Below the pieces are notes generated by a model. The model ran no database searches. It was not told the DNA's origin and saw only the letters and a list, made by a program, of their open reading frames with translations. A program made the translations under genes and the position numbers. From contig CBFFRP010000231.1 in the NCBI GenBank assembly GCA_965644295.1, forward strand, positions 74,361 to 138,360: DNA of 64,000 nucleotides, read 5' to 3'. Positions 39,403 to 61,900 of this stretch are shown piece by piece (position 1 is the stretch's first letter; every line of letters starts with the position of its first letter). The DNA comes from Paraphysomonas bandaiensis (lineage: Eukaryota; Protista; Chrysophyceae).

Positions 39403-42400
39403 ATGTCTATTCTTTCATATCTTCTTATCTCTACATCTCTTTGGTTTACATCAGGTGTGACAGTAGTGTGTCCAGGCGCTAGTTCATCATCATGTAAATG
39501 CCAACAAACGGATGGCAATCTAACGTGTCCGACTGGATTTTACTGTCCCGGATACAGTCCCAGTCAAATACAAGATAATATAGAGGCTATTACAGCAGCA
39601 AATTGTACTGTCAGATCATCTGATGGAGAACTGCAGTGTCCATGCACGCCAGGTACACATATACGCATACGCACACACATATATATACACTCATGTATAT
39701 GCAGAGCATGTATATATAAATATCCTCAATCATATGTCCTCACATGCTCTATGAAAGGGTTTTACTGTCCAGAGAACACTCTCACTCCATCGTATTGCTG
39801 TAAAGGGGTAAGTTATTTTGTATTTATTTATTTTTAAAGTAATAGTGTTCATTATGAAGCACTTCTGTGAAACCCCATCAGTGATAGAGGAATGCAAAGA
39901 AGGATACTTCTGTAAAACTGGATATGTGGAGGGCCTGAAGTGCGACAGTAAAGCGAGTTGCCCGGCTGGGTCGGAGGACTCAAATAGGAGCGGTGCTCTT
40001 ATCGGTATATTAATCATAGCTATTATCCTCTACATTGCCTTCTTGGTCAAATACTACATTGAGTCGAAAGTGAAGGAGGCCAAAAATTTGATGCTTATAC
40101 ACGCCAAAGAGGGAGAAACAGAAAACAATAGTGAAGTGGCAGTTGTAGAGGAATTGTCTCCTGCAGCAGTTGATCGCATGAGCCTCGTGGAGGGTGCTCG
40201 TCCGCTTGTTCGACAACGATCGCGCCGCTCCAAGGAATCAGAAAGTTCACCGACGAAACATGAATCAGCTCACACTTCACCGAGTCAAATGTCCATGTCA
40301 TCCACCGAAGATGCAACAGAGGGGAGAGGAAGAAGTAGTGACCAGGATATGACATATCTAATAGAATTCAACGACGTGGGCCTCATACTTCCTTCTGGAG
40401 TTCAAATCATGAAGGGTGTGACTGGACAATTCAAGCCCAAGAGACTTTGTGCTATAATGGGGCCGTCTGGGGCAGGGTATGATTTTATTAATTGGTTTGT
40501 TTTGTCTTGGTAATAGGTTTATAATAGCAAGACAACCATAATTAATCTCGTTACCGGAAAGGCGGCCAAAACTGAGGGCATCATAAAGGTAAATGGAGAG
40601 GAAGTTGATGACTTGTCCAGGTCAGTTATGAGTTATTCTGTATTCATCTGCTTTCACCTGACGGGACAAATACGCATTAATGCAGATGGAAAAAGTTAGT
40701 TGGTTTTGTGCCTCAAGAAGATGTCATGATCAGACAGCTAACTGTAAGAGACAACATAGAGTTTTCTGCGTCTTACAGACTTCCAATCGAAATGAGCAAG
40801 AGTGAAAGAGATGCAGTAGTCAACGACACTCTTCTGTCCCTGGGTATTGATCACGTCCAGCACTCTGTAATTGGTATGGGTGCTTCATGTTCTAATATCT
40901 ACTTCACGTATTCCGTTTACTAGGTGACGAGCGAGAGAGAGGTATATCTGGTGGGCAAAGAAAAAGGTGCAACTCGTATTCTTGTAAATATGATTTTCTC
41001 ATATTATGCTAGGGTTAATATTGGTATCGAGCTTGTCGCACTTCCTCGTGTACTCTTCTTGGTAAGTTCGTATTTTACTCGTGTACTTCGATGTCAATAT
41101 CCATGAACTTACGTATAGACTGTATATTGTGGTTTTAGGACGAGCCCACCAGTGGTTTGGATTCTACTTCATCAGCTGTTCTTGCAAGACAACTGAAAGA
41201 TATTGCCAATAAATCTGGTGTTACAATAGCTTCTGTTATTCATCAGCCATCCATCCAGGCTTTTCTAGAATTTGACGACTTGCTGCTGCTAGGCAAAGGT
41301 GGACAGGTGGTCTACCATGGCCCTATTAACGAGGCATCGGCATATTTCGAGGCGATAGGATTTACCCCTCAAGGATTAATAAACCCCGCGGACTTCTACT
41401 TGGATATTGCTAACGGGGCGGTAGATAGAGAGGGTGATCCGGACTTCACACCACCTGATTTGTTCAGATTTTGGGACAACAAGGTATACACATATTATGA
41501 AATTACCTTTTTAAAGGTTGTGTGATGGTGCAGATACATGGCCGCCCTCTAGATCAAAAGGAAGATCTTCCTGTTTCCGATGGTGGAGAGGAAAAGAACT
41601 CTGGTGGCTTGAATGACGTACTATTAAAGGATGCCGAGGGAGGGGAGCAGGTGTGTGTACGTGTAATTTTCCTATATTCTTGAAGTAGACCTATAGCGCA
41701 CTCGGGCCCGCACGACCACTGTGGTAGGAGGGCGAGCAAGCAGTGTAGCAGCTCATTCTCCACAGCATGCGGAAAAAGTGCACGCAGAACTCAATCCATT
41801 TCGCAGTGCTGCTACATTTTGTATTTTCTTACAGTCTATTGTTCTATTTTTTTGGGGTATCATAGCCAGCTTTTTAGATGACATAAAAGGTGTGCTGATT
41901 CAAGCGTTCAAAGATATAACAAGAACAGATAGTATCAGAAATACACCTGGATTTCTGGGACAATTGTACGTCTGCATCATCCGGGCTTTTAAACAGAAGT
42001 ATCGCCGTTTTGGTGCTTTTTTGAGTCAGATGTTGATTCACTTGGGGGTTGCTCTGGTGGTATCGTCTGTTTCCACTGATCTTCAGTATGTGGGCCCTCT
42101 TCCAGATGTTGTGTGTGGCACTGTGACGAGAGATTTGCATGACTCCTGTACATCGCCATTGGTTGATAGTTATCAAGGAACGGCAAATTTTCTGGTGTTT
42201 GGAACTATATTTGCCGCAATATCCATCTCGACAGGAACGTTCAGTAACGAACAAGTAAACTACTGGCGTGAAACAGCAGCTGGGCTCAAGACAATCCCAT
42301 ATTTTATAGCTAAGTGGCTTGTCGAGGTTCCTAATATTGTTTTGGCTGCTGTTTTCTTTTGGCTGGCATTTCAAATTCGATTTCCAAATACAGGCACTTC

Positions 42401-42845
42401 CGGTGACTTGTACGAACTATTCTTCGCTATGTACTGGTGGGCTTGGTCACTCGGATTCTTTTTGTCCTCAATTGCTTCGCCGAAGAATGTGTTTTTAACT
42501 GGAGTATTATTTGCGTTACTATATGCTGTGGGGTTTTCTGGTGCTAATCCTACTATTAATGAGATTCGAGATCTGCCAGACAGCATTCGCTGGTTGTGGC
42601 GTATATCTGGAACCCGGTGGGCCTTAGAAGCCTTTTATGTATCTCAAGTCAAGTACTATGAAACTGTTCCCACTGGCCCCCTCGATGGTGAAGATTACAT
42701 GAATGTTGATGCTGGACTTGACCAAATTGGTTATAATATCGACAATTTTAATTATGATATTGCAGCTCTGATGTGGAATGGGTTCGGCTATGGAATCACT
42801 GCAATGGTTATAATGATGTTTACAAATCGAGATAAGAAAAAGTAA
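39403..42845 (+). CDS. ABCG half-transporter with N-terminal signal peptide and Cys-rich extracellular domain (ADP1 / plant ABCG24-28-like architecture)
   Basis: Hydrophobic N-terminus, GFYCP repeats, a TM segment, Walker A GPSGAGKTT, signature ISGGQRKR, Walker B LFLDEPTSGLD, IHQP and an ABC-2 TMD; all joined by GT-AG introns. Confidence 0.92.
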
Positions 42846-43390: not shown

Positions 43391-46300
43391 TCAAAAACGA
43401 AAGGATTTTGACATCAAACTAACTTTTCCAAAGCTTCTCGTACTGTTGTTCAATGAGTGCGTGCCATCATCAATATCAGGAGAAATATTATTTCCTCCAT
43501 TTTCAACCCCACACTCTGCTTCATCTATGCCGAATTCTTCTGACGGGGCATACAAATTTCCATTACTTGAACTTCCTATGGTGATGTGATCATAAGCCAA
43601 ATCTGATGGCACCTGATGAGGTTCCAATTGGTCTACTAGAGGAAAATACTTTTGGACATCAGACTTCTTTATTCTATGTGACCGTAACTGAGCTTGTGTG
43701 AGGTCCTTGCGGGATAATATGCCAGTGACCTGATCATACAGAAGTGACAAAGCGTAGAATACATAGAAAATGTAGACACCTTGCAGTCAGAGTCAATAAC
43801 TATGAGATGCCGCAGTCCGAGAGTCCGAAACATTCTAAATACAAGTAATCATGTCATCAGGAAAAGTCATCATAGATGCATACCTGAAAGCCTTCTGCAC
43901 TGATGCTGACTCCAGTATAACATACGGGGAAGGGTCCATATATCGCCTGAAGTCCATCCAGAGAGACAGACTGCTTTCCTCCACTTGAAGTGAGTCTGTA
44001 CCGGAATTTTATTAGAAGTAACACACCATGGAATATTCTTTAATAATCAAAAAACGCGGTAGAACAAAAAAAACAAATAACATATAAAGCGCAATATCGA
44101 AAACACTGCTGTACCTATCGATATGACACTATTAACCGGGGGAGGTTGTAGAGGCTTAACTTGAACAGGGCACAAAGTCACAGCTTCCTTGTATATCTCA
44201 TCCGTGCTGTGTAATGGGACAGAGAAAATAGACGATTGCAACATACGACAGAGAGTAGACCGGTCAATAGATCCCTTCAACTGGCCAGTATCACCTGTTG
44301 GTGTTGCACCTGACGTTAATTGAACAACAAGCAATCTCTACTACTTACTAAGGATAGGAAAAAGGTTATGCGAGGTGGACTGCTAGGATGTGAGCGCAAT
44401 GATTGCAAAGAGTACTGTATATCACACACCTGAAGCGTCTCATACACATTTCCCACTCTCTCAAGGCTTCTAAGAAAAACAACTGGCTTGGCCATAAACT
44501 CTGTAGAATATTCAATAGAGTAGTTAACACAGAGGTCTTGATAGCAATCTCTAGTCACCAGTAACAGGAAAGAAATTTACAAGCCCCATATCAGTCATTG
44601 ACTCAGGCAGCCAAGGCAAATCACGTAGCACAACCAGACGGTTATAAAGGCCAGTTGTCAGCATATCGCCGATATACTTCGCCGCCAGCAGTGAGAGCAT
44701 TATTGGCAAGACATACTATTGACAACGTAGAACCACTTAAATAGAAGGTGCAAGACATATTGTCGCCTACTCACCTGTAAGTTTCCGGTTGCTTCCACCA
44801 TCATAACTGTAAGAGAAATAGTGTTGCGGCACACGCCCCCTATCATAGCAGCCGCTCCAACTAGGGCGTATGTACCTGAATCAGATATCTCTGTGTATAT
44901 GCACCATAAAACGAGCTCTGCTATATGGGTGACAATACTACCTTCAAAGTACTGCTGCAGTACGTGACCTATCAGTCGGCCCATCACAGCTCCAGATACT
45001 AGGCAACTCACGAATACTCCCTAACAAATATTAGTGTATCATAAAAAAACATATATACACAAACCGCTGCAGCCATAATTCCGCATGTGGCACACGCGAG
45101 AATATAGTAGGGTAAAAATACAACCAGCAGTGAGCCTATGCCACAACACATTAGCTAAATCGGAGTCAAGGAAATATTAAGTTCTATACCAGTGTCGAAT
45201 GTGTGCGAGGACATGTGTTCACGGAAATGAAACAGAAATCTACAAATTAACATGACGTTGGAGACAACAGCGCATGTATTTCGCATTACTTTATAGCAGT
45301 ATTCGAGTCCACGTAGAAGAGTGAAGCCACCTGATTATACTGATTTGCAGGACAGTCGAACTGCACCAGACGGCTGATGAGCGTCTGCATGCATTAAATT
45401 TAAAGAAAGTACGTCATCTAAAAGCAAGCAATAGGCAACTCACTTTCTCATCTGAGGTGTATCCACTCATGTCTGTCGGCATATCGGAGCAGACGTGCCA
45501 TATCAGCGGCACCTGTCAACCACAACCGTTGTCAACACATATATATACCTATATATAAGTGGCGGGATACCGTGAAAGTCATCCACGCAGTAAGGGAAGA
45601 TATGATGAGGATCTCAATGAATCGCTTGCGACTGTCATTAAGCATGTATCTCTGCACATTCGGCAATTTGTCACAGGTTTACATTCCAACATATATATAT
45701 CTACTTTTCGCCAATCCGCCAGAATACCATTGAAATGCACAAATAGCGCTCCTAGTACTCCTCCTGACACCATGATTATAAAAGAGATATAGTAGCAATT
45801 TATTCATTCAAACATACCGAGACACCCCATCAGGAAGAAGAGAGTCAGCTCTATAAGAAAATATGGGTACCTGTCTCCGACAAGCATAACCTGCAGCCAT
45901 AAAACACGTCATTACGAAAGAACATTAGTGTGGTTATTGGGAACCTCAGAAAACTTTCCAAAAGAGAAGTTAGACGTCATGTCCTCACCATCGATGCGGA
46001 GAGCTCGGTCCATGATTATAACTGCAGAAGATGTTGCGTCGTACGTGGTATGATCTGTGGTCACGAAAAACGTACCTGTTAAGAGAGTGATACAGGAGCA
46101 AAAGAACGCCCGCCAGGTCATCTTTGTAGACCAGAAGGACGCTCCTTCTTCAAGAATAAAAAGCACCCCACCTACAAAGCTGTGAGAGATATTCATGCAT
46201 ACATACGCTATCTCACCTATGGGGGCTCGAAAGGCAGCTGCAATACCTGCAGCAGCCCCATAGGTTACGAAATCTCTAGAGTCGGCGTCGTTTCTCAGAG

Positions 46301-47190
46301 AATTAAATGTTGTCCAATCCGTAGCGCCACCCAGTACAACGTCTGCATACCATTTCGAAATCGCTGCCCCGATGATAGCACCCACATGAACCATTGGGCC
46401 CTCCGGCCCAGCAAATAGCCCTGTATATACCACACATAATGAATCAATATAGCGGCCCAAGCCTCAGAATCACACACCGCTGGCAACTGTGAAGATAACG
46501 GATCCACACTTAGCAAACAGAGTCCGTAAGCGCACTACCTTTTCCATCTGGACTCCATTGAGGTAGCTGAATCTAGTGTCAACGATATACTTTTTATGGA
46601 ATACAACCAATGTACCTTTTGATCTCTGGGATTCCCGAGCCTAATGCCGCTGGCTCATAATAGACAAAAAGAAACGATACTGTAGAAAACACAAGGGCTA
46701 TAAGAAAATGCCAACAAAATGCAACTCCCCATCTGCCAGAATACATGTATCTGGTAATGATGTCGTTTTTTAAGTTAACAAGAGTAATTGTGGACATGTG
46801 AATGCCAACTCCAAAAAGAGCGCACAAAATTCCAGTCATTGTAATTAAAGACCATCGAAATACAGCTCGCTTCTTGTTGACTGAAAAGTAAACGCCTTTA
46901 TCGTAATTAGATTCTCGAATAGCGTGCTGTTAATACCATGATATTAACACACAGTCACCATACAGAGAGATACGTACCTTCTTCCACTCACTGCTCTCTA
47001 CTGTATCATAATCTAATGACTCCTCATGTCTTGACTCCCATTTCTTGAAACGAGTATCTATAAAACACGATAATTAGTGATATAATAATAAAATCCTATG
47101 CTATATATACATACATTTCGATCCATGTCGATACCGTAAAGGTGATTCATTAAACTCTTTTTGGAAGTAATCTCGCCATAATGATGGCAT
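43391..47190 (-). CDS. CLC chloride channel / Cl-/H+ exchanger (CLC-6/7-like) with CBS domains, many introns
   Basis: GSGIPE, GPEGPMVH (gating Glu), GAAAGIAAAFRAPIGGVLFILEE, YALVGAAA, TISLTVMMVEATG, GLY, GILSRKDL; ATG at 47190. Confidence 0.92.
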
Positions 47191-47782
47191 TTCCTTTTAT
47201 CTGATAGTGATATCAGTCTCCCTGTATCACTTTACCGCCTATAGTCTCATGTAATGAATATATAGTTAATATTTCATTGTTTACACTGATTTCTAAGTAA
47301 GGAAGTTTAAATTTTATCAATCCACTGAAAACTAATATGAAAAACATCAATTTTCATGAAGGAAAGGTTACCAAAACCCGTATTTTCTGAAGAATACTCC
47401 ATTGGGTGATAATTTCGGGATATTGATATAAATAGCACAACCAAATTTTCGTGTAAAAATGTCTGATATTTCCACATCTTACGATTCAGAAATTCTCAGT
47501 TTTAGTTTTCAGGATTTTTTTCTGGGATTTTAGTGCAAGAAATTTCAATGAAGTGAAGTGAGATGATTGAACCAGTAATATTATATAAAAAGTGCTACAA
47601 GAGCGTTAATTTGTGCAGAGTGTTTGAAGTGAACTCTTTTCATAGAATCTTCAGACACTTCATCTACTACCAACACACTGTCATATATATATGCGTATAT
47701 ACATATATATTCATAGAGATTCATATCAAATCAAGTACAGTCTACTATATATAATCTCCAGTGAATATAATCAGTAAACAAT

Positions 47783-50700
47783 ATGGAATTTCCACCATCT
47801 CCAGTGGAGAGTATCCGACAATGGGCAACAGATCGAATGCGTAAGCGTTGCTTTGAGTTTAACGAAGGGACAATGAAAGATAAGGCTCATCTAGGACTAA
47901 AAGGTTTAACATAATTAAACTACATATACACATATATCATGAACTTGTTATTGTCAGGGGCATGTTTATGTGAACTTTCAAAGTAAGATTTTCATACGAG
48001 ATACTGTGGTAACCTGTAGTCAGGCTTGGTCTTCCTGTTCCACCTGGATTTATTATATCCTCTGGTGAATACTTACTCCATCGATGATTTGATATATTAC
48101 AAATATATAGAAACTTGTTCAGACTTCTTTAAAGGGAATCAGTCCATGCCTGCTCATCTGATGGATTGCTGTCGAATGTCCATTAAGAGTATAGAGAGTG
48201 TTACCGGAAAGACTTTTGGTGTAACACCTGATTCAACTAAGGAATCGATGCCACTTCTGTTGTCTATTCGTGCTAGTGCTGCTGTGGATATGCCAAGGTG
48301 CATATATGCTTACAGTATAGTTACACTGATTACCATGTACCGTGTAGCATGATGGACTCAGTGCTGAATCTGGGGATCAATGAGGAAGTGGTTCGGAAGA
48401 TCATAACAGTTACTGGAAACCCACGGTTCGCTTTTGATGTACAGCGCCGATTTCTTCAGCAATATGGGACGGTTGTCTTGAAAGTACCAAAGAGCCATTA
48501 CAGTGATATTGTATATGAGGCAAAGGCACACGACGGAGTTGCTTTTGATTGCGACTTGTCGTACGAAGCACTGAAGAATATTGTGGATGAGTTCCTCAAA
48601 ATTACCGATGTGCCCCATGATCCGATGGAGCAATTTCGAAGAGCTGTCGAAGCGATATTTTGCTCCTGGTACTCTCCAAGGTATGGTTCCAGTCTGGATG
48701 TTCGTTCGTCATAGTATTGGTAGGGCTATGAAGTATCGTGATGTCAACAGCATTGGCGAAAATTTGGGTACTGCTATTGTAGTCCAGGTGAGATATTCTT
48801 GTTGTCATAGTAAGACGTAAGAAACTGTTTTTCAGAACATGGTATTTGGTAATATCAATGCCCAGTCGTGTACGGGGAGAGTTTTCAGTCGTGATCCTAA
48901 TACGGGTGCAAACTGCATCTACGGTACTTCTATATGGCGGTGTATATATGAGACATAAGCTGTAATTCCAGGAGAATTTGTGTGTCAGGCGGAAGGGGAT
49001 AACGTATCTGAAGGCTTAGATCAGCAACCCAAGATGATAGAGGTATGACCACATGTTAGCGTATGCTTAATGAGTCAAGAGAGTTTGTGCTTCTCTATAA
49101 CTGAGCAGGAAATGGAATCATATTTGCCAGAGGTTTATCGAGAAATCCTTCGCATTTCACAAGTGATTGAGCAATTTTTTGGAGACGCACAGGCGAGTCC
49201 ATAATGTTCACCATATATGCGCATTTTCTCTTCTTGAAAGGAGTAATCGCTGCTATGTATTGAGTGAACTCCTCCCGATTACTCAGTTCCTTTTACAGTA
49301 TACTCCGTCAAAGAATATGTGTAATGTTTGGACATAGGAAATTGAGTTTACGGTACAGAGCGGAGTACTCTTTATATTGGAGACAGTGAATGCCCGCCGC
49401 TCTCCAGAGGTATATCTACAATATACCGTCGACTATATATTGCAGCTCATGCACCGCAGGCTAATGTTAAAATTGCCGTAGATATGGTACAAAACTTGCA
49501 GCTAACGGTAATACGGTGTGATGTTCTGTACGTTATATAAATTTTATCCAGGAACGTGAGGCGCTGATGCGAGTGGACCCAAAGATGGTTATTTTAAAAC
49601 TACGCCATAGCCTATCTGACCCCCCTGCAAAATGCAGATGTCTTACTTCACCCATCCACAGATCGACCCCCAACTGAGTATGTGCTTTTTTTCTTCCAGC
49701 TTCTAAATAATAGCTTGTTGTAGTCACAAGCGAGGATTTGGTCCTGGGACATGGAATTCCTACTACGTCGGGTGCCGTTTCTGGCCTGGCTGTATTCAAT
49801 GAAGATGACGTAGTACGACTAAGCAGAGAGGGGAAATCGACTATTTTGGTAGACAAGTTGCGTACGTATCTCCATTAATTGCTAAAAATGGTATAGATTC
49901 GCAACGAGTCTTCTGCTGACGACATCCTAGCTATAAATGTGTCCAATGGTGTGCTCACAATGCACGGAGGTTCAGTGCTCTTGTCGAGTTGCTTGTGTAT
50001 AATTTCTACTCAGGGGTAACAAGCGTAGCCCACGAACTTGCAAGATCCATGGGGAAAACCGCAATTTCAGGTGAATTTTGGCAAACGAACATTTGCATCC
50101 GTTATGTGTATGTACATGTATGTACAGCTGCCTCCAACTGCGGTATGGAGCTGGATCTTGAAGGTGAGTGTGTATACGACAGTGAAGGAGAGGTATGTAT
50201 CCGAAAGGAACAGGTATGGACTTGTGTTACTGCCAAAACAATTTAAAAATAAGTCAGGAAATAACTCTTGATGGCTCCACTGGAAAAATTCTTAACGGAT
50301 GCAGTGCAACGGTGCCTATAGGTGAAGTAGAAGTCTGCATAATATTCAAATATAATACTTCAATAGGAGCCAAGTTGGCTTTTAAGTCCCTAACGAATTG
50401 GGCAGACCAGTACCGACGGTAAATAGCTACTCGTAGTTGGCATTGTTATAGTATACTTATCAGGATGTCTCTATATGCCACTGTCGACTCTGCTGCTGAG
50501 GCGTTCAAGGTGGCAAGTTGTACCTATACGATATTATAGTCAACAGTAGTATTAGGCAATTGAGCTACGTCCTGACGGAATTGGACTGTTTCAGTAAGAT
50601 GTACTAGCATTTATATCTACAAATGTGTTGATGGTTTCGTCAGAACGGAGACAATATTTCAGGATACAAAGTGTCATGATCTAGCAAATTTGTATTTTTT

Positions 50701-52411
50701 ATCATCTTCCAAGTGAGTAGAAAGTCACATTTGTTTCCATTGTTTGATGGAAGCAGATCTATGAAAGAGGACAGCTTGTATAAACTAGAAAGAATACATC
50801 GACAGAAACTGATGGAGGTGAAACACTGATAATAGAAAGAATTGAAACTGATTTCTTGACAGGTGTTTCAGTTATTTCCTAACCGAGTTGTATCTGTGAG
50901 GCAAGCAGATAAAATCATGGCTTAGATATATATATTTATATTTGGTATTGCCAGACTTCTTGATTCTTCAATTAACTGCTTCCTTGGTATTTTCGGTGCG
51001 GAGTGAATTTCGAAGGATAAGATAAGAACTTAATAGCGTATTTGGGCAGGGGAGAGAAATGCACCCAAAGACTCATCTTCCGCCAAGCTTCATGAGTTAG
51101 AAGAAATAAACCCAGCAATTGGTGTCCGGGGCTGTAGGTCACTTCCCGCGATGTTGTAATTTGTCCATATAACACTATATTACTTTGCAGAAGAGCAATA
51201 ATGAACCCAGACTTTCTTGCCATGCAGATCCGTGCAATGATAAGTGCGTTCACAGGAATGGTACATTAGCTGTGACTTATTCGTTTGCGTTCAGAGGCCG
51301 CAATAGACGTGAAGACTGAATTAAAACCCGTGAATCTAGAAATTCTAGTTCCAATGTTAACCTCCGAGCACGAGGTAAGAAGTTCACATATTTCGCTTCA
51401 CGTTTTTTATCAAATCAAGTAGCTGGATTCTATTATTAAAAACATCAACGCCACTGTATACGAGGTAATGCGTATATTATGTTAGAATGTTACTGTTAAA
51501 CATCCTTTATAGGTGTTCGATGCAGAAGGTGCAACTGTTGAGTATCGTATCGGTGCAGTTATTGAGGTAATTGCAGTCATATGAAGCACAACACACACAG
51601 TATGGTGATTATAACATACAGACTCCGCGAGCATGCCTATGCGCCAACAAGATTGCTAGAACAGTAAGTTTATGACTTTTTCTTAATTGTGTATATTATA
51701 TATTTGTAGGAAGGACTGTCTTTTGTCGTCTTTGGACTGGACCGACTGACCGAGCTTACTTGCGGACTCTCAAGGTACATATTTTCAAGTAGCGGGAGAA
51801 GGGTCGATAACGTAACTGCTATTTTAATAAGAGCCGATACTGAAGCCATGATATCCACTTATAATGTCAAGGGAATTATTCACAAGGGTTCGTTAATAGT
51901 TGTTAACTTATTTGAAAAATAATACATACTTGTCTATGAAATACAGACCCCTTCTGCGCCCTGGACACGCATGGTGTAGGCGTTCTATTGACTGCAGGAG
52001 TAAACTTAGTTCGGTGCGAATATACCTTTAACATGTTTGGTCGTGAATCTTGAATTGCAGCAAAGGAGCGGCCAGCATGCCGATTGGAGTGTTTGGATGT
52101 CAGTGTGGCCACAAAAAAACTGTGAACTACTTTGATAAGCTTAATTTGGACTTTGTAAGTTATCATTTTTATATTTTAACAATACATGCTTATTTTATGC
52201 TAGATAATCAGTTCGATTAGCCACCTCCCCGCTGTTAAGATTTGCTGTGCACAGGCTTACATCACATCGATGAAAGGTCTTTAATGTCAAACTCTATGAT
52301 TGTCGATTACACTCAGTTGTATATTTCACGTTAGAATTTAAGCAGACTTGGATCGAAGAATCTCAGGAAGATTTCCAAGAGGATTTTGCTTCCCATCCTT
52401 TCTTAATTTGA
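47783..52411 (+). CDS. Full-length pyruvate phosphate dikinase (PPDK)-like protein with substituted catalytic residues; about 36 introns (2 GC-AG)
   Basis: Spliced translation: GLKGACL, LGLPVPPGFII, PLLLSIR..AAVDMPSMMDSVLNLG, GTAIVVQNMVFGN, SRDPNTG, IEFTVQSG, GGVTSVAH, ITLDGSTG, WADQYRR, GIGLF, VRLLD, NPAIGVRGCR, IETPRA, DPF..LD..GVG; open to TGA at 52411. Confidence 0.9.
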
Positions 52412-53639
52412 AGATTTGAAAGAGTGAATTGAATCGGGCATATACTTTATTTCGCACCGTATTTTTGCCATTTAGTATTCGTTTAATTTGTTTTTGATTT
52501 GAATATGCTTTTGGCTACGTTAGTTTAGTTTGTTTTTAATTGAATTTTATCATCAATGACGAGTTATATATATATACTATCAATATACACTCCTCTCTAC
52601 TCAGTTGTGCCAGCTTTGAGCAGCATGCTGGTTTAAGGAATACAAGGGTGAAACCGTGATTATACATTATACCAATTGACGAAATTATTATATATCTTAG
52701 TATACTACCAATATTTCGCTGAGCCTATGCATATCAAATCAACTACAGCAGAATATGCCATTCATGGATCAAACATAAGAATCTCCTAGCTTCTTCAAAT
52801 GTGTAGATATCCAAGTCCAAAAGTCACGAGCTTACGAACTTCTCCAAATGTACATAAAGTCTATAATTCCATTGGAATCAAAATGGCATATATACTTGAG
52901 TATTTATTCTCAATGGAATTGTAGCACAAAGAAACTCTCGCGGCAGTTAATTAATCGCATTGTTCTCACTTGATACCCATTCGATGGTGCTTTGGCTCAT
53001 ACTGTTGTCATGGAAGTATTCCTCTATCCATATATCGTTCAATATGCATGGGCTCGTAGCTCTATTGTTGTCTCCTGTCAGGTGTGTACACTGACGTACA
53101 ATGAGGATACTATACGGATACTGCTGTATACTCACAGCAACACACTGGCCTACTCTTCTGCTGTACTGTTGTCGGGTTTTCGTTCCTAGACAGGCAGTTC
53201 TTTTTATATCCTCACAGCAGAGTTGTGAGTATGATGGACTCACTCGACAATTATAGCTTTCTATTATCCATACGGTGTGAACCTTATCAAGGTTTCATAC
53301 TGCAATACAATAAAAATTGATCCGAAGTCTGTTCCAATCTTTTTTTGTGTGTGCGGAGGATCGAACCTCACTTCTGTTACAGTTCTTTTTTGTATTCTCA
53401 TTATCTATAAAAAACACCCATATTTTCTTATATTCAACATTTTATCAGGTTTTCGACAACTACAATCCAGTAATATGGTATTTCTAATAATAAAGGGGGT
53501 TTTCTAGTCAATTCTTGGGCAGTTTGGTAAGTACATTGTACATATGATGCCATCACAGTGATATCCCATCATTAAACTAGAATTGCATTTCACGACAAGG
53601 GATTTAACATAATCTTTCTATTCTTTATTCTGTAATATT

Positions 53640-54131: not shown

Positions 54132-55998
54132 TCACCTTTTATCATCCGAGTATACACCAGGGGCTACAAATGTATCGTAAAATTATATACAATGGCTTAA
54201 TTGCTAAAAATAACGCTATATATAGACTAACTTATCTAGGCAGATCATCATTTCGGGAGTATAAATATGATGAAAAGACACACTATAAGAGGAGCAGCAT
54301 CTATCTCCTGTGGAATATTGGTCCACCATACGGGGAAACCACTCCTCTGAAGCATCAAACTCTTCCTGAGGATTAAGTGGGTGGAAGGTTTCGAGTCCAT
54401 CGACAGGGTGAGTCGTGGAGGTCGGGGTGATGCCCGCCTAATTTAGGGTGGTCAGTACAACATTTAAACAGTTGGGGTAAAAACTCACCTCGAGAAGGCA
54501 CCTGCCTACCATAAGGTCTTCCATACTACAGTATATATCCGGTAGACATCGAGATGATACACCGGATGGAGGATAGAGAAGATCGTACAGTGTCGCAACA
54601 GCTGCTCGGTTTAGGACGTATCCCGATCCTCCTGAGTGAAAGGACACGTACGCATTCGCATGAACTAGTCTACCGAGATACAAAGGTGTACCTACAATGC
54701 AGCACGTTACAACCACCACACAAAATCATTAATAATATACCAGTCATAGAAGTCGTATTTTTTAATCGAAGGAGACCCTTGAGGTTATCAACATGTACGT
54801 AGAGATCGTCTCCTCCCAATACAAAGAAATCGTACTCATCTATCAGGTCAGAAAGTGCAACCGTAGACCATATAAGTTGTGCCTTGTTCCACATCTTATC
54901 ATAAGATTCCGTCCAATGGTTCGAGCCTTCTTCGAAGAAAAGGTTGTACACAAAATCCATGGATATAGCTCCCAAAGAATCGTCTGTGTGATCAGAGAAG
55001 GCCAGAAACCCATCGCAGCGCCGACCCCACGAGTCCGTAATAGATTCCAGAGCAGCAGACTTAGAACTGAGAGTATAAATCATGCAAAGAACAGTTAGAT
55101 TAGATTCAGCAGGGGGGAAAGTTTGTTGAGACTGAACAACTCCAGCACCATCCACGCCAAATAAATCCTTGACTTTATCCCTACACTCCGACTGCGTGAC
55201 GGATTCTCTTATCGCTCCAACCTTCTTCAAGCTCACCGCTCGTGCAAGTTCACTGATATATAAGCGGTCTGAGAGTGGCATTTCATTGTTGCACAGTTCT
55301 TCCTTCGTGGAACGCTGATGCCGCCTCCAGATGCAGGAGCTACCTGCCACCACGCAGTAAGAGGGCGACTGAGTATATGACCGCTTCGCCCGCACATCGG
55401 ATCGAAAAGCACTGACAACTGCTTCACGTTCACCATCTTCAATAACATCCTTGTATTCGATCGGCCGAATGCCAGATGCCGCTAACATGTGATACAATGC
55501 ATCCGAAGTCATGTGATCCGCAGATATAAGATCCGCAGCAAAGACAATAGTGAATGGAGGGTTGGGGACAATCTGAAGCACGTACAAAAGAAAAGAGTAC
55601 GATGCAAAGAATATTTCCTTTCCGACTAGAACCACGTCACTATGTGATATTCGGTCTATGACTACGTCAATACCATTCAACGAAGTGGCATCTTGATATA
55701 ATGTGGCCACGCGGGCATGGTCCGCCGACACAATATGCTGATAATGCAACGGATTCAAGAGCACTGGAATAGTCTGAACTTTACTCTGGTCGCATATGTC
55801 ATATACACTTTCAACTTCATCTTTCTCCGTTATTATCGTATATTCTACATCAGTTGCTGTGCTCAGACAAACTAAAGAACGTAAAGAGCTGATATCAGCA
55901 GTTGATATGGACGGCTGAACTACTAGAATAGAGAGAGGGTGTGTAACAGCTGGGAAAACAAGCTGAGCAAACAGCAATAGTTCAATTAATTTCTTCAT
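54132..55998 (-). CDS. GT31 glycosyltransferase (core-1 beta-1,3-galactosyltransferase-like) with a signal peptide and N-terminal extension
   Basis: VLCMIYT, DSWGRRCD, DFFVLGGDDLYVHVDNL, PLYLGR, SGGSGYVL, EDLMVGRCL, ETFHP, CCS..SVSFH. Confidence 0.85.
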
Positions 55999-58996: not shown

Positions 58997-61900
58997 ACTA
59001 ATAATTTGTTACAATCCAGGCGTGCAGTTTTGTTGAGCGGACGGTATATGGGTATATGGTATGTAGATACCGCGTCAGCCCCATAGTGTTTTACTCTTGC
59101 ACGGGTCATGGTGAGACAATGACAGTCTGTTTCGATGAGGTAACTTGCAACACTATCTGTCATCGATATTGTATTTGCGAATTTATTTTTATATATACTG
59201 CATTGCCATCAGCCCAACTCTTCTCTTTGATGTTTAGTTGGGGGCTAGTTATAATGCAACAATATGTGATGGCTCATCACACAAAATGTGTGTTGGGTCC
59301 TATATCATGCGTGGTTACCATCATCTGGCTGTCAGCATCAGTGATAGTTAGATATACGTATCACGCACATTCACGTGGTAGCATTAAAAGCCAATGTTTA
59401 GTGTTTATATGCTGTGTGATGTACTAATCATTTGTTACAATCTAGGCGTGCAGTTTTGTTGAGCGGACGGTATATGAGATTACGTTTGTTGCCTGGAGCA
59501 GAGAAACGATGAGTCTGTAGTATGTGATGTAGCTATATGGTATGTAGATACCGCGTCAGCCCCATAGTGTTTTACTCTTGCACGGGTCATGGTGAGACAA
59601 TGACAGTCTGTTTCGATGAGGTAACTTGCAACACTATCTGTCATAGATATTGTATTTGCGAATTTATTTTTATATATACTGCATTGCCATCAGCCCAACT
59701 CTTCTCTTTGATGTTTAGTTGGGGGCTAGTTATAATGCAACAATATGTGATGGCTCATCACACAAAATGTGTGTTGGGTCCTATATCATGCGTGGTTACC
59801 ATCATCTGGCTGTCAGCATCAGTGATAGTTAGATATACGTATCACGCACATTCACGTGGTAGCATAAAAAGCCAATGTTTAGTGTTTATATGCTGTGTGA
59901 TGTACTAATCATTTGTTACAATCTAGGCGTGCAGTTTTGTTGAGCGGACGGTATATGAGATTACGTTTGTTGCCTGGAGCAGAGAAACGATGAGTCTGTA
60001 GTATGTGATGTAGCTATATGGTATGTAGATACCGCGTCAGCCCCATAGTGTTTTACTCTTGCACGGGTTATGGTGAGACAATGACAGTCTGTTTCGATGA
60101 GGTAACTTGCAACACTATCTGTCATGGATATTGTATTTGTGAATTTATTTTTATATATACTGCATTGCCATCAGCCCAACTCTTCTCTTTGATGTTTAGT
60201 TGGGGGCTAGTTATAATGCAACAATATGTGATGGCTCATCACACAAAATGTGTGTTGGATCTTATATCATGCGTGGTTACCATCATCTGGCTGTCAGCAT
60301 CAGTGATAGTTAGATATACGTATCACGCACATTCACGTGGTAGCATTAAAAGCCAATGTTTAGTGTTTATATGCTGTGTGATGTACTAATCATTTGTTAC
60401 AATCTAGGCGTGCAGTTTTGTTGAGCGGACGGTATATGAGATTACGTTTGTTGCCTGGAGCAGAGAAACGATGAGTCTGTAGTATGTGATGTAGCTATAT
60501 GGTATGTAGATACCGCGTCAGCCCCATAGTGTTTTACTCTTGCACGGGTTATGGTGAGACAATGACAGTCTGTTTCGATGAGGTAACTTGCAACACTATC
60601 TGTCATGGATATTGTATTTGTGAATTTATTTTTATATATACTGCATTGCCATCAGCCCAACTCTTCTCTTTGATGTTTAGTTGGGGGCTAGTTATAATGC
60701 AACAATATGTGATGGCTCATCACACAAAATGTGTGTTGGATCTTATATCATGCGTGGTTACCATCATCTGGCTGTCAGCATCAGTGATAGTTAGATATAC
60801 GTATCACGCACATTCACGTGGTAGCATTAAAAGCCAATGTTTAGTGTTTATATGCTGTGTGATGTACTAATCATTTGTTACAATCTAGGCGTGCAGTTTT
60901 GTTGAGCGGACGGTATATGAGATTACGTTTGTTGCCTGGAGCAGAGAAACGATGAGTCTGTAGTATGTGATGTAGCTATATGGTATGTAGATACCGCGTC
61001 AGCCCCATAGTGTTTTACTCTTGCACGGGTTATGGTGAGACAATGACAGTCTGTTTCGATGAGGTAACTTGCAACACTATCTGTCATGGATATTGTATTT
61101 GTGAATTTATTTTTATATATACTGCATTGCCATCAGCCCAACTCTTCTCTTTGATGTTTAGTTGGGGGCTAGTTATAATGCAACAATATGTGATGGCTCA
61201 TCACACAAAATGTGTGTTGGGTCCTATATCATGCGTGGTTACCATCATCTGGCTGTCAGCATCAGTGATAGTTAGATATACGTATCACGCACATTCACGT
61301 GGTAGCATTAAAAGCCAATGTTTAGTGTTTATATGCTGTGTGATGTACTAATCATTTGTTACAATCTAGGCGTGCAGTTTTGTTGAGCGGGCGGTATATG
61401 AGATTACGTTTGTTGCCTGGAGCAGAGAAACGATGAGTCTGTAGTATGTGATGTAGCTATATGGTATGTAGATACCGCGTCAGCCCCATAGTGTTTTACT
61501 CTTGCACGGGTTATGGTGAGACAATGACAGTCTGTTTCGATGAGGTAACTTGCAACACTATCTGTCATGGATATTGTATTTGTGAATTTATTTTTATATA
61601 TACTGCATTGCCATCAGCCCAACTCTTCTCTTTGATGTTTAGTTGGGGGCTAGTTATAATGCAACAATATGTGATGGCTCATCACACAAAATGTGTGTTG
61701 GGTCCTATATCATGCGTGGTTACCATCATCTGGCTGTCAGCATCAGTGATAGTTAGATATACGTATCACGCACATTCACGTGGTAGCATTAAAAGCCAAT
61801 GTTTAGTGTTTATATGCTGTGTGATGTACTAATCATTTGTTACAATCTAGGCGTGCAGTTTTGTTGAGCGGACGGTATATGAGATTACGTTTGTTGCCTG

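Follow-up and report, generated by a model that had tools for sequence, protein, structure and literature searches.

Pyruvate, phosphate dikinase (PPDK) counts as a textbook swivelling-domain enzyme. Canonical PPDK (EC 2.7.9.1; structures C. symbiosum 1KBL/1DIK, maize 1VBG, Flaveria 5JVJ and Trypanosoma brucei 2X0S) consists of an ATP-grasp domain, a swivelling phospho-His domain and a phosphoenolpyruvate (PEP)/pyruvate barrel, in that order, and to our knowledge every characterised member relies on the phospho-His. The phosphoryl group is ferried by this His between two distant sites, the dimer forms via the barrel domain, and His-mediated phosphotransfer is the defining trait of the family (PMC5556012). 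Here we describe a PPDK-like gene on the + strand of a 64,000-nucleotide (nt) stretch of Paraphysomonas bandaiensis DNA, referred to below as the window, whose product shares the domain order of canonical PPDK but, judged from its sequence, would be incapable of His-mediated phosphotransfer.

Features of canonical PPDK that are missing from the PPDK-like protein include the phosphocarrier His, Cys831, Asn768/Asp769, Arg561, Arg337 and Gln335. We regard it as likely that the gene encodes a PPDK-derived pseudoenzyme of 893 residues, which has kept the three-domain fold, does not carry out the dikinase reaction, has been maintained for a long time and acts by binding.

Gene model, homology and predicted fold

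The window corresponds to positions 74361-138360 of contig C231 (CBFFRP010000231.1) in a 62.6-Mb eukaryotic assembly of 669 contigs. The PPDK-like gene occupies window positions 47783-52284, with very short exons and introns of around 48 nt, and its frame was started at the first ATG of a public cDNA contig, L101 (47783). The gene model is as follows.

47783-52284, + strand: PPDK-like coding sequence, 893 open codons, 36 exons and 35 introns, stop TAA at 52282-52284
Exons 1-12, + strand: 47783-47903, 47958-47982, 48024-48064, 48111-48297, 48348-48680, 48724-48787, 48836-48923, 48972-49042, 49109-49192, 49338-49409, 49460-49507, 49552-49587
Exons 13-24, + strand: 49638-49677, 49724-49848, 49897-49969, 50014-50070, 50128-50213, 50258-50321, 50367-50418, 50464-50509, 50556-50593, 50644-50712, 50757-50817, 50863-50900
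Exons 25-36, + strand: 50955-50995, 51050-51137, 51191-51243, 51295-51374, 51423-51464, 51513-51566, 51622-51663, 51710-51774, 51832-51887, 51947-52013, 52061-52154, 52204-52284
49193-49337, + strand: GC-AG intron of 145 nt, the longest of the gene
52155-52203, + strand: last intron, from cDNA L101

An earlier, sequence-only reading of the locus had proposed about 36 introns, with an extra terminal intron and an end at 52411. The many-intron architecture stood, but the count is 35 (33 GT-AG and 2 GC-AG). The cDNA is unspliced from 52204 to 52480 and places the stop and the last intron at the positions given above, so the proposed terminal intron and the 52411 end are wrong.

The 893-residue joined model was used for alignments, trees and substitution counts, and the database, family and fold steps were run on single exons or on the public proteins P0158, P0151 and P0059. 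The largest exon (48348-48680) alone matched residues 101-218 of Clostridium symbiosum PPDK with an E value of 2e-24, and the transcript protein matched the solved C. symbiosum enzyme with an E value of 2e-137, well outside what chance would give. Pfam searches identified PF01326, PF00391 and PF02896 at 74.9, 40.0 and 117.9 bits, each above its gathering score; together with the 893 codons open over 36 exons, this bears out the sequence-only reading on the presence of all three PPDK domains in an open frame. Against the TIGR01828 equivalog model, P0158, which is without about 120 N-terminal and 88 C-terminal residues, scored 618 bits (cut-off 843).

An AlphaFold2 model of P0158, built from a 30-sequence alignment, had a mean pLDDT of 83.8 and a pTM of 0.71, with pLDDT below 50 only in the loop after the Arg617 strand and in a frame-shifted tail; the model spans P0158, and the first 121 and last 88 residues of the 893-residue protein lie outside it. 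Its top Foldseek match was 1KBL (TMq 0.85), and the structural matches include the PPDK mutants 1JDE (K22A) and 2DIK (R337A). Canonical PPDKs are about 33-34% identical to the PPDK-like protein across ~720 residues. PEP synthase, PTS enzyme I and rifampin phosphotransferase share with it the swivelling His domain together with a barrel or ATP-grasp domain, but are far weaker matches (E values no better than 1e-30, TM at most 0.27), and each of these enzymes needs the very His that it has lost. A protein-atlas search returned nothing beyond ordinary bacterial PPDK clusters. Among full-length homologs whose source is known, the nearest are from chrysophytes (Epipyxis, Mallomonas and Ochromonas). 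The 35 spliceosomal introns and these chrysophyte relatives led us to reject contamination by bacterial DNA or a recent horizontal transfer.

Replacement of catalytic residues

Residues were read from an alignment to a solved PPDK and from a profile of 59 bacterial PPDKs, with C. symbiosum numbering. The roles of the site residues other than the phospho-His are those reported from mutant studies of C. symbiosum PPDK; we take Asn768-Asp769 to be the ligands of the PEP phosphate and Mg, Cys831 to be the proton donor and Arg561 to belong to the PEP site. The corresponding elements of the gene are as follows.

47783-49409, + strand: N-terminal ATP-grasp (PPDK_N) domain, with Lys22, Arg92 and Glu323 kept; EIEF...LETV
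47894-47903 joined to 47958-47959, + strand: GLKG motif (Lys22)
48263-48277, + strand: SIRAS motif (Arg92)
49377-49388, + strand: LETV (canonical LQTR)
49966-49969 joined to 50014-50045, + strand: phosphocarrier loop GGVTSVAHELAR
50014-50070, + strand: exon with the degenerate loop G-V-T-S-V-A-H-E-L-A-R; Val474 is GTA at 50025-50027 and His476 is CAC at 50031-50033
50577-50593 joined to 50644-50653, + strand: GIGLFQTET (canonical GIGLCRTEH), interrupted by intron 50594-50643; Arg561 replaced by Gln
50901-50954, + strand: second GC-AG intron, flanked by exons encoding SVRLLDSS, with Arg617 kept
51731-51754, + strand: FGLDRLTE (canonical FGTNDLTQ); Asn768-Asp769 replaced by Asp-Arg
52086-52109, + strand: GVFGCQCG (canonical GICGEHG); Cys831 replaced by Phe and the following Glu by Cys

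Re-reading of the sequence showed that the motif readings and coordinates of the sequence-only reading were all correct. The phosphocarrier His455 is replaced by Val (Val474), in the genome as well as in RNA-derived proteins, which leaves no residue to shuttle the phosphoryl group between the two sites. At the PEP/pyruvate site, Arg561, Arg617, Glu745, Asn768, Asp769 and Cys831 read Gln, Arg, Glu, Asp, Arg and Phe. At the ATP/phosphate site, Asp321, Gln335 and Arg337 are replaced by Glu, Glu and Val, with Lys22, Arg92 and Glu323 unchanged. The residues kept by the protein are thus Lys22, Arg92, Glu323, Arg617 and Glu745, together with Thr453. Of the 228 columns in which the 59 bacterial PPDKs show conservation of 95% or more, the protein retains 142, which indicates that the losses gather at the chemistry rather than being evenly spread. 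The PPDK-like protein is, in short, a clear enzyme homolog with its catalytic residues replaced.

Transcription and splicing

Transcript evidence was drawn from public protein collections and public cDNA contigs (MMETSP and JGI assemblies). P0158, to which the large exon and then a word search based on a paralog's transcript protein led, is a 746-residue MMETSP transcript open reading frame (ORF) that is identical to the window at 740 of its 746 residues and spans 30 introns. Its cluster mate P0280 is a 791-residue ORF on the 3015-nt contig L101 (JGI sample 3300017004).

47725-52562, + strand: transcribed region; cDNA L101 in 37 blastn blocks, 36 at 100% identity and one block in the 3' untranslated region at 99.7%
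48065-48110, + strand: 46-nt GT-AG intron kept in cDNA contig L101; retention leads to a stop after 69 codons
51858-51867, + strand: 10 nt present in the genome and missing from both transcript assemblies; the RNA frame shifts to a stop at 51977-51979

Exact splice junctions are visible in L101 for 34 of the 35 introns, which settles the splice-junction question for these. The remaining intron, 48065-48110, was assigned from the frame, its GT-AG ends and homology: in paralog L092 the region matching this junction is continuous coding sequence, so with the intron excised homology and frame are both recovered. In P0158 and P0280, too, the sequence of the carrier loop is G-G-V-T-S-V-A-H. RNA and genome therefore agree, and there is no editing or splicing that restores T-S-H, an outcome that would have spoken against the sequence-only reading.

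The 10-nt stretch at 51858-51867 has CT..GT ends and is not spliceosomal. Its genomic version preserves frame and homology (YNVKGIIHK, compared with YNAQGIIHK in the sister paralog), and the difference might reflect allelic variation, an event at the RNA level or an artefact.

An eleven-copy family

Searching the 62.6-Mb assembly with the large exon identified 11 PPDK-derived loci, and a canonical chrysophyte PPDK as query returned the same 11 and none further. Paralog structures were obtained by spliced alignment with our own script. The copies form one clade in an N-domain tree (SH-aLRT 96), and three changes are common to all 11: the second Gly of GGKG is replaced by a hydrophobic residue, profile position 276 is Glu, and Gln335 has become Glu or Asp.

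Four copies are full-length: the window gene, its sister C149, C162 and C349. None has the phospho-His. The residues after T-S in the carrier loop are VAH, AAP, AGA and RAA, respectively, the Cys831 position is Phe, Phe, Ser and Ser, the Asn-Asp pair reads DR, DR, ER and DH, and Gln335 is lost in all four. Asp/Glu-Arg at 768-769 is common to the window gene, C149, C162 and a full-length homolog from another organism, L104.

The other seven paralogs (C132, C352, C238, C19, C77, C204 and C151; loci L093, L094 and L096-L100) align over the ATP-grasp domain alone, and no central- or barrel-like sequence was found within 7 kb downstream of them. In all seven, Gln335 is replaced by Glu or Asp and Asp321 by Tyr or Phe, and several retain Arg337. 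C132 is transcribed, and the frame of its cDNA (L102) stops soon after the domain.

The loop residues bear on an alternative in which the protein is still an enzyme with altered chemistry, either using His476 or another nucleophile of G-G-x-T-S as the carrier or running a different reaction on the ATP-grasp domain alone. In the predicted model neither the fold nor the swivelling central domain is disrupted, Lys22, Arg92, Glu323, Glu745 and Arg617 are retained, and all four full-length paralogs, as well as L104, conserve G-G-x-T-S in the loop. His476, however, which the sequence-only reading had offered as a shifted carrier, is peculiar to the window gene, its place being taken by Pro in C149 and by Ala in C162, C349 and L104. 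Both partial-reaction sites have moreover lost key residues together (Arg337 and Gln335 at the ATP-phosphate site; Arg561, Asn768, Asp769 and Cys831 at the PEP/Mg site), and by established enzymology a Ser or Thr phosphoester is unable to act as a high-energy carrier. We consider an altered enzyme very unlikely.

Two further proposals of the sequence-only reading, a regulatory subunit of active PPDK and a decoy for the PPDK regulatory kinase (the PPDK regulatory protein, PDRP), presuppose partners that were searched for in the assembly. Such a role would run via the Thr of the T-S-x loop: the Thr equivalent to the regulatory Thr453 is retained in all full-length copies, and mixed dimers are conceivable given that PPDK dimerises via the barrel (PMC5556012). 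Against this, no canonical PPDK was present among the 11 loci obtained with either query, a degenerate DNA pattern for T-S-H-A-x-x-x-x-R had 0 matches in 62.6 Mb compared with 4 for the reversed control, and the PDRP family PF03618 gave no match in the assembly, tiny exons limiting the sensitivity of each of these searches. A query with a canonical C-terminal half likewise brought no canonical PPDK among its matches, which were only C349, C162 and one weak, unrelated place, and it missed the window gene too. Whole-genome Pfam searches, in which PF01326 missed the window locus and PF02896 had no match, were too insensitive for genes with such exons. The family appears to comprise the only PPDK-type genes in the genome, and both the subunit and the decoy are disfavoured; we judge a role of this kind to be highly improbable.

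Age of the copies and selection

The window gene and C149 are 70% identical, with proportions of nonsynonymous and synonymous differences (pN and pS) of 0.171 and 0.835, the latter saturated; the pattern extends to each of the three domains. The window gene has intron positions in common with C149 (34 of 35), C162 (25) and C349 (23), which indicates that the gene was already rich in introns when duplication at the DNA level produced the copies; an origin by retroposition was rejected on the same grounds. In a relative-rate test with C162 or C349 as outgroup, the window gene and C149 had 60 and 51 unique replacements (p 0.45). The window gene is thus not decaying faster than its sister.

These results can be set against the view that the gene was recently disabled, as a transcribed pseudogene or as a null allele of the transcriptome strain, its frame as yet undecayed. 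The 10-nt deletion in both public transcript assemblies shifts the frame and drops about the last 88 residues, and the cDNA contig also keeps the 46-nt intron. The genomic frame and splice sites are, however, undamaged, with 893 open codons and GT/GC-AG ends at 35 of 35 introns, and the gene does not evolve any faster than its sister. Intron retention, for its part, is also seen for C162, whose JGI cDNA (L103) keeps a 54-nt intron that is removed in the MMETSP assembly of the same gene; the latter has a clean frame to the stop, with 817 of 817 residues identical. Retention therefore varies by assembly or isoform and is not peculiar to the window gene. Recent disablement is in our view unlikely, and the data point, at the level of sequence, to purifying selection on the gene and to its conservation between species.

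Single introns are often left in place in the assembled cDNAs of this organism, and which introns are removed from a given gene varies between the MMETSP and JGI versions.

Homologs in other organisms

Short database matches, corresponding to exons on genomic contigs of other sequencing runs, led to contig L104 (run ERR14369873), which carries a full-length homolog; 29 of its 34 introns lie at positions common with the window gene. The two are 50% identical (pN 0.34, pS 0.79). The motifs of L104 read GLKG, LETV, GGITSAAAEIAR, FDMDRLTE and GMFGNQCG, and its PPDK-like gene adjoins the same divergent chloride-channel gene as in the window.

43610-47190, - strand: ClC chloride-channel gene, divergent neighbour, separate from the PPDK-like gene

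The ClC gene of L104 is collinear with this interval at 60-92% identity per exon. A homolog with the same substitutions, of the kind that the sequence-only reading had suggested looking for in relatives, is thus found in another organism beside the same ClC gene. In the full-length tree, L104 and a partial homolog, L106, are nested in the clade of copies predicted to be catalytically dead, after the C349 branch, with a support of 100. This placement indicates that the predicted loss of catalysis came before the duplications and before the split of these organisms.

As a separate observation, the ClC gene (L104:224-3998 compared with window 43610-47190, - strand) is far better conserved than the PPDK-like gene (50%).

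Other His-less homologs have degenerated differently and lie outside the clade of the window gene. P0154/P0023, from Ochromonas sp. CCMP1393 (MMETSP0005), is a 955-residue PPDK homolog with the His-less loop GGRDTYGAEIMR and Glu at Gln335. Unlike the window gene it has every residue of the PEP site (GTNDLT, GVCGEH), its losses being limited to the His and Gln335. Transcript-sized contigs encode three more full-length homologs without the His, P0213, P0020 and P0044. Those His-less homologs whose source is known are eukaryotic, as is the window gene. No paper describing P0154, P0213, P0020 or P0044, all present in public protist data, was found.

A different arrangement was seen at L105:1500-13500 (ENA contig ctg6402_2x_l, sample ERZ25074135), where two head-to-head PPDK-like genes show complementary degeneracy. 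The + copy retains GSKG, LQTR, the His and the Cys and has IDSSRLSQ at the Asn-Asp motif, and the - copy has LETG at Gln335/Arg337 and retains the His, GTNDLTQ and GVCGDH. The pair could represent subfunctionalised halves of one reaction.

Genomic surroundings

The neighbours of the PPDK-like gene in the window are unrelated to PPDK. Besides the ClC gene they are as follows.

about 39818-42845, + strand: ABCG-type transporter, upstream neighbour
54670-55998, - strand: 442-codon ORF

Two identical 123-codon ORFs lie further downstream on the + strand, at 59056-59427 and 59537-59908, with a spacing of 481 nt; the pair suggests a tandem duplication.

Discussion

The view of the sequence-only reading that this is a retained non-catalytic paralog rather than a decaying pseudogene is upheld by the intact frame and splice sites, transcription, a pN far below a saturated pS, a rate equal to that of the sister copy and the L104 homolog. 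Several of the replacements are themselves conserved, and several bring extra negative charge to the former ATP-phosphate site or have an Arg in place of an Mg ligand. This pattern suggests that the pockets were rebuilt and that the protein's mode of action is binding. Both earlier active sites would then have been remodelled rather than decayed, and are probably no longer sites for Mg-ATP and Mg-PEP. A metabolite sensor, another of the roles proposed earlier, is conceivable as such, but the remodelling of both ligand sites counts against it. We favour, as a guess, a protein that serves as a scaffold or conformational switch and may still dimerise through the barrel; its partners might be the full-length and ATP-grasp-only paralogs, or it might bind some other ligand. 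It would not be a regulator of active PPDK, because none was found in the genome.

Some points weigh against a long-maintained, non-catalytic binding protein. The existence of the protein and its inactivity are predictions from DNA and RNA sequence. The five retained site residues (Lys22, Arg92, Glu323, Glu745 and Arg617) leave room for some ligand binding or unforeseen chemistry. The only cDNA of the gene both keeps intron 48065-48110 and is without 51858-51867, and each defect truncates the protein. Saturation of synonymous divergence means that omega is only bounded, and a very recent loss of function would escape the test. Finally, exons of about 20 codons lower the sensitivity of the searches behind the negative result for canonical PPDK.

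A broader proposal, which we put forward tentatively and hold to be possible rather than probable, is that an ancestral PPDK of the stramenopile lineage was converted into a non-catalytic multigene family, with four three-domain and seven ATP-grasp copies here and counterparts elsewhere. Its sites would have been rebuilt in a conserved manner (Glu/Asp at 335, Glu at profile position 276 and Asp-Arg at 768-769) to serve as a ligand- or partner-controlled switch or scaffold. If so, the PPDK swivelling-domain machine would have been put to a new use, and the ATP-grasp-only copies could dock to the His-less central domain.

Literature searches found no paper on natural, selectively maintained His-less PPDK homologs. 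The form described here, predicted to be dead, is expressed, old, duplicated to eleven copies and common to at least one other organism, and it offers a tractable case of what a large three-domain phosphotransfer machine is used for once phosphotransfer has gone. There is also a consequence for annotation: pipelines will label such genes 'pyruvate, phosphate dikinase' and thereby introduce a false PEP-pyruvate-pyrophosphate step into metabolic models of protists, and some related public database entries are already named 'pyruvate,orthophosphate dikinase'.

A parallel in concept comes from T. brucei, whose flagellar PGK-like and GAPDH-like proteins, paralogs of glycolytic enzymes, are reportedly inactive as enzymes. 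These flagellar proteins (PMC4106842) differ from the PPDK-like protein in having an unrelated fold and lineage, and there is no sign of a flagellar location for the latter, but the idea is the same: a paralog of a central-metabolism enzyme retained after its catalysis was lost.

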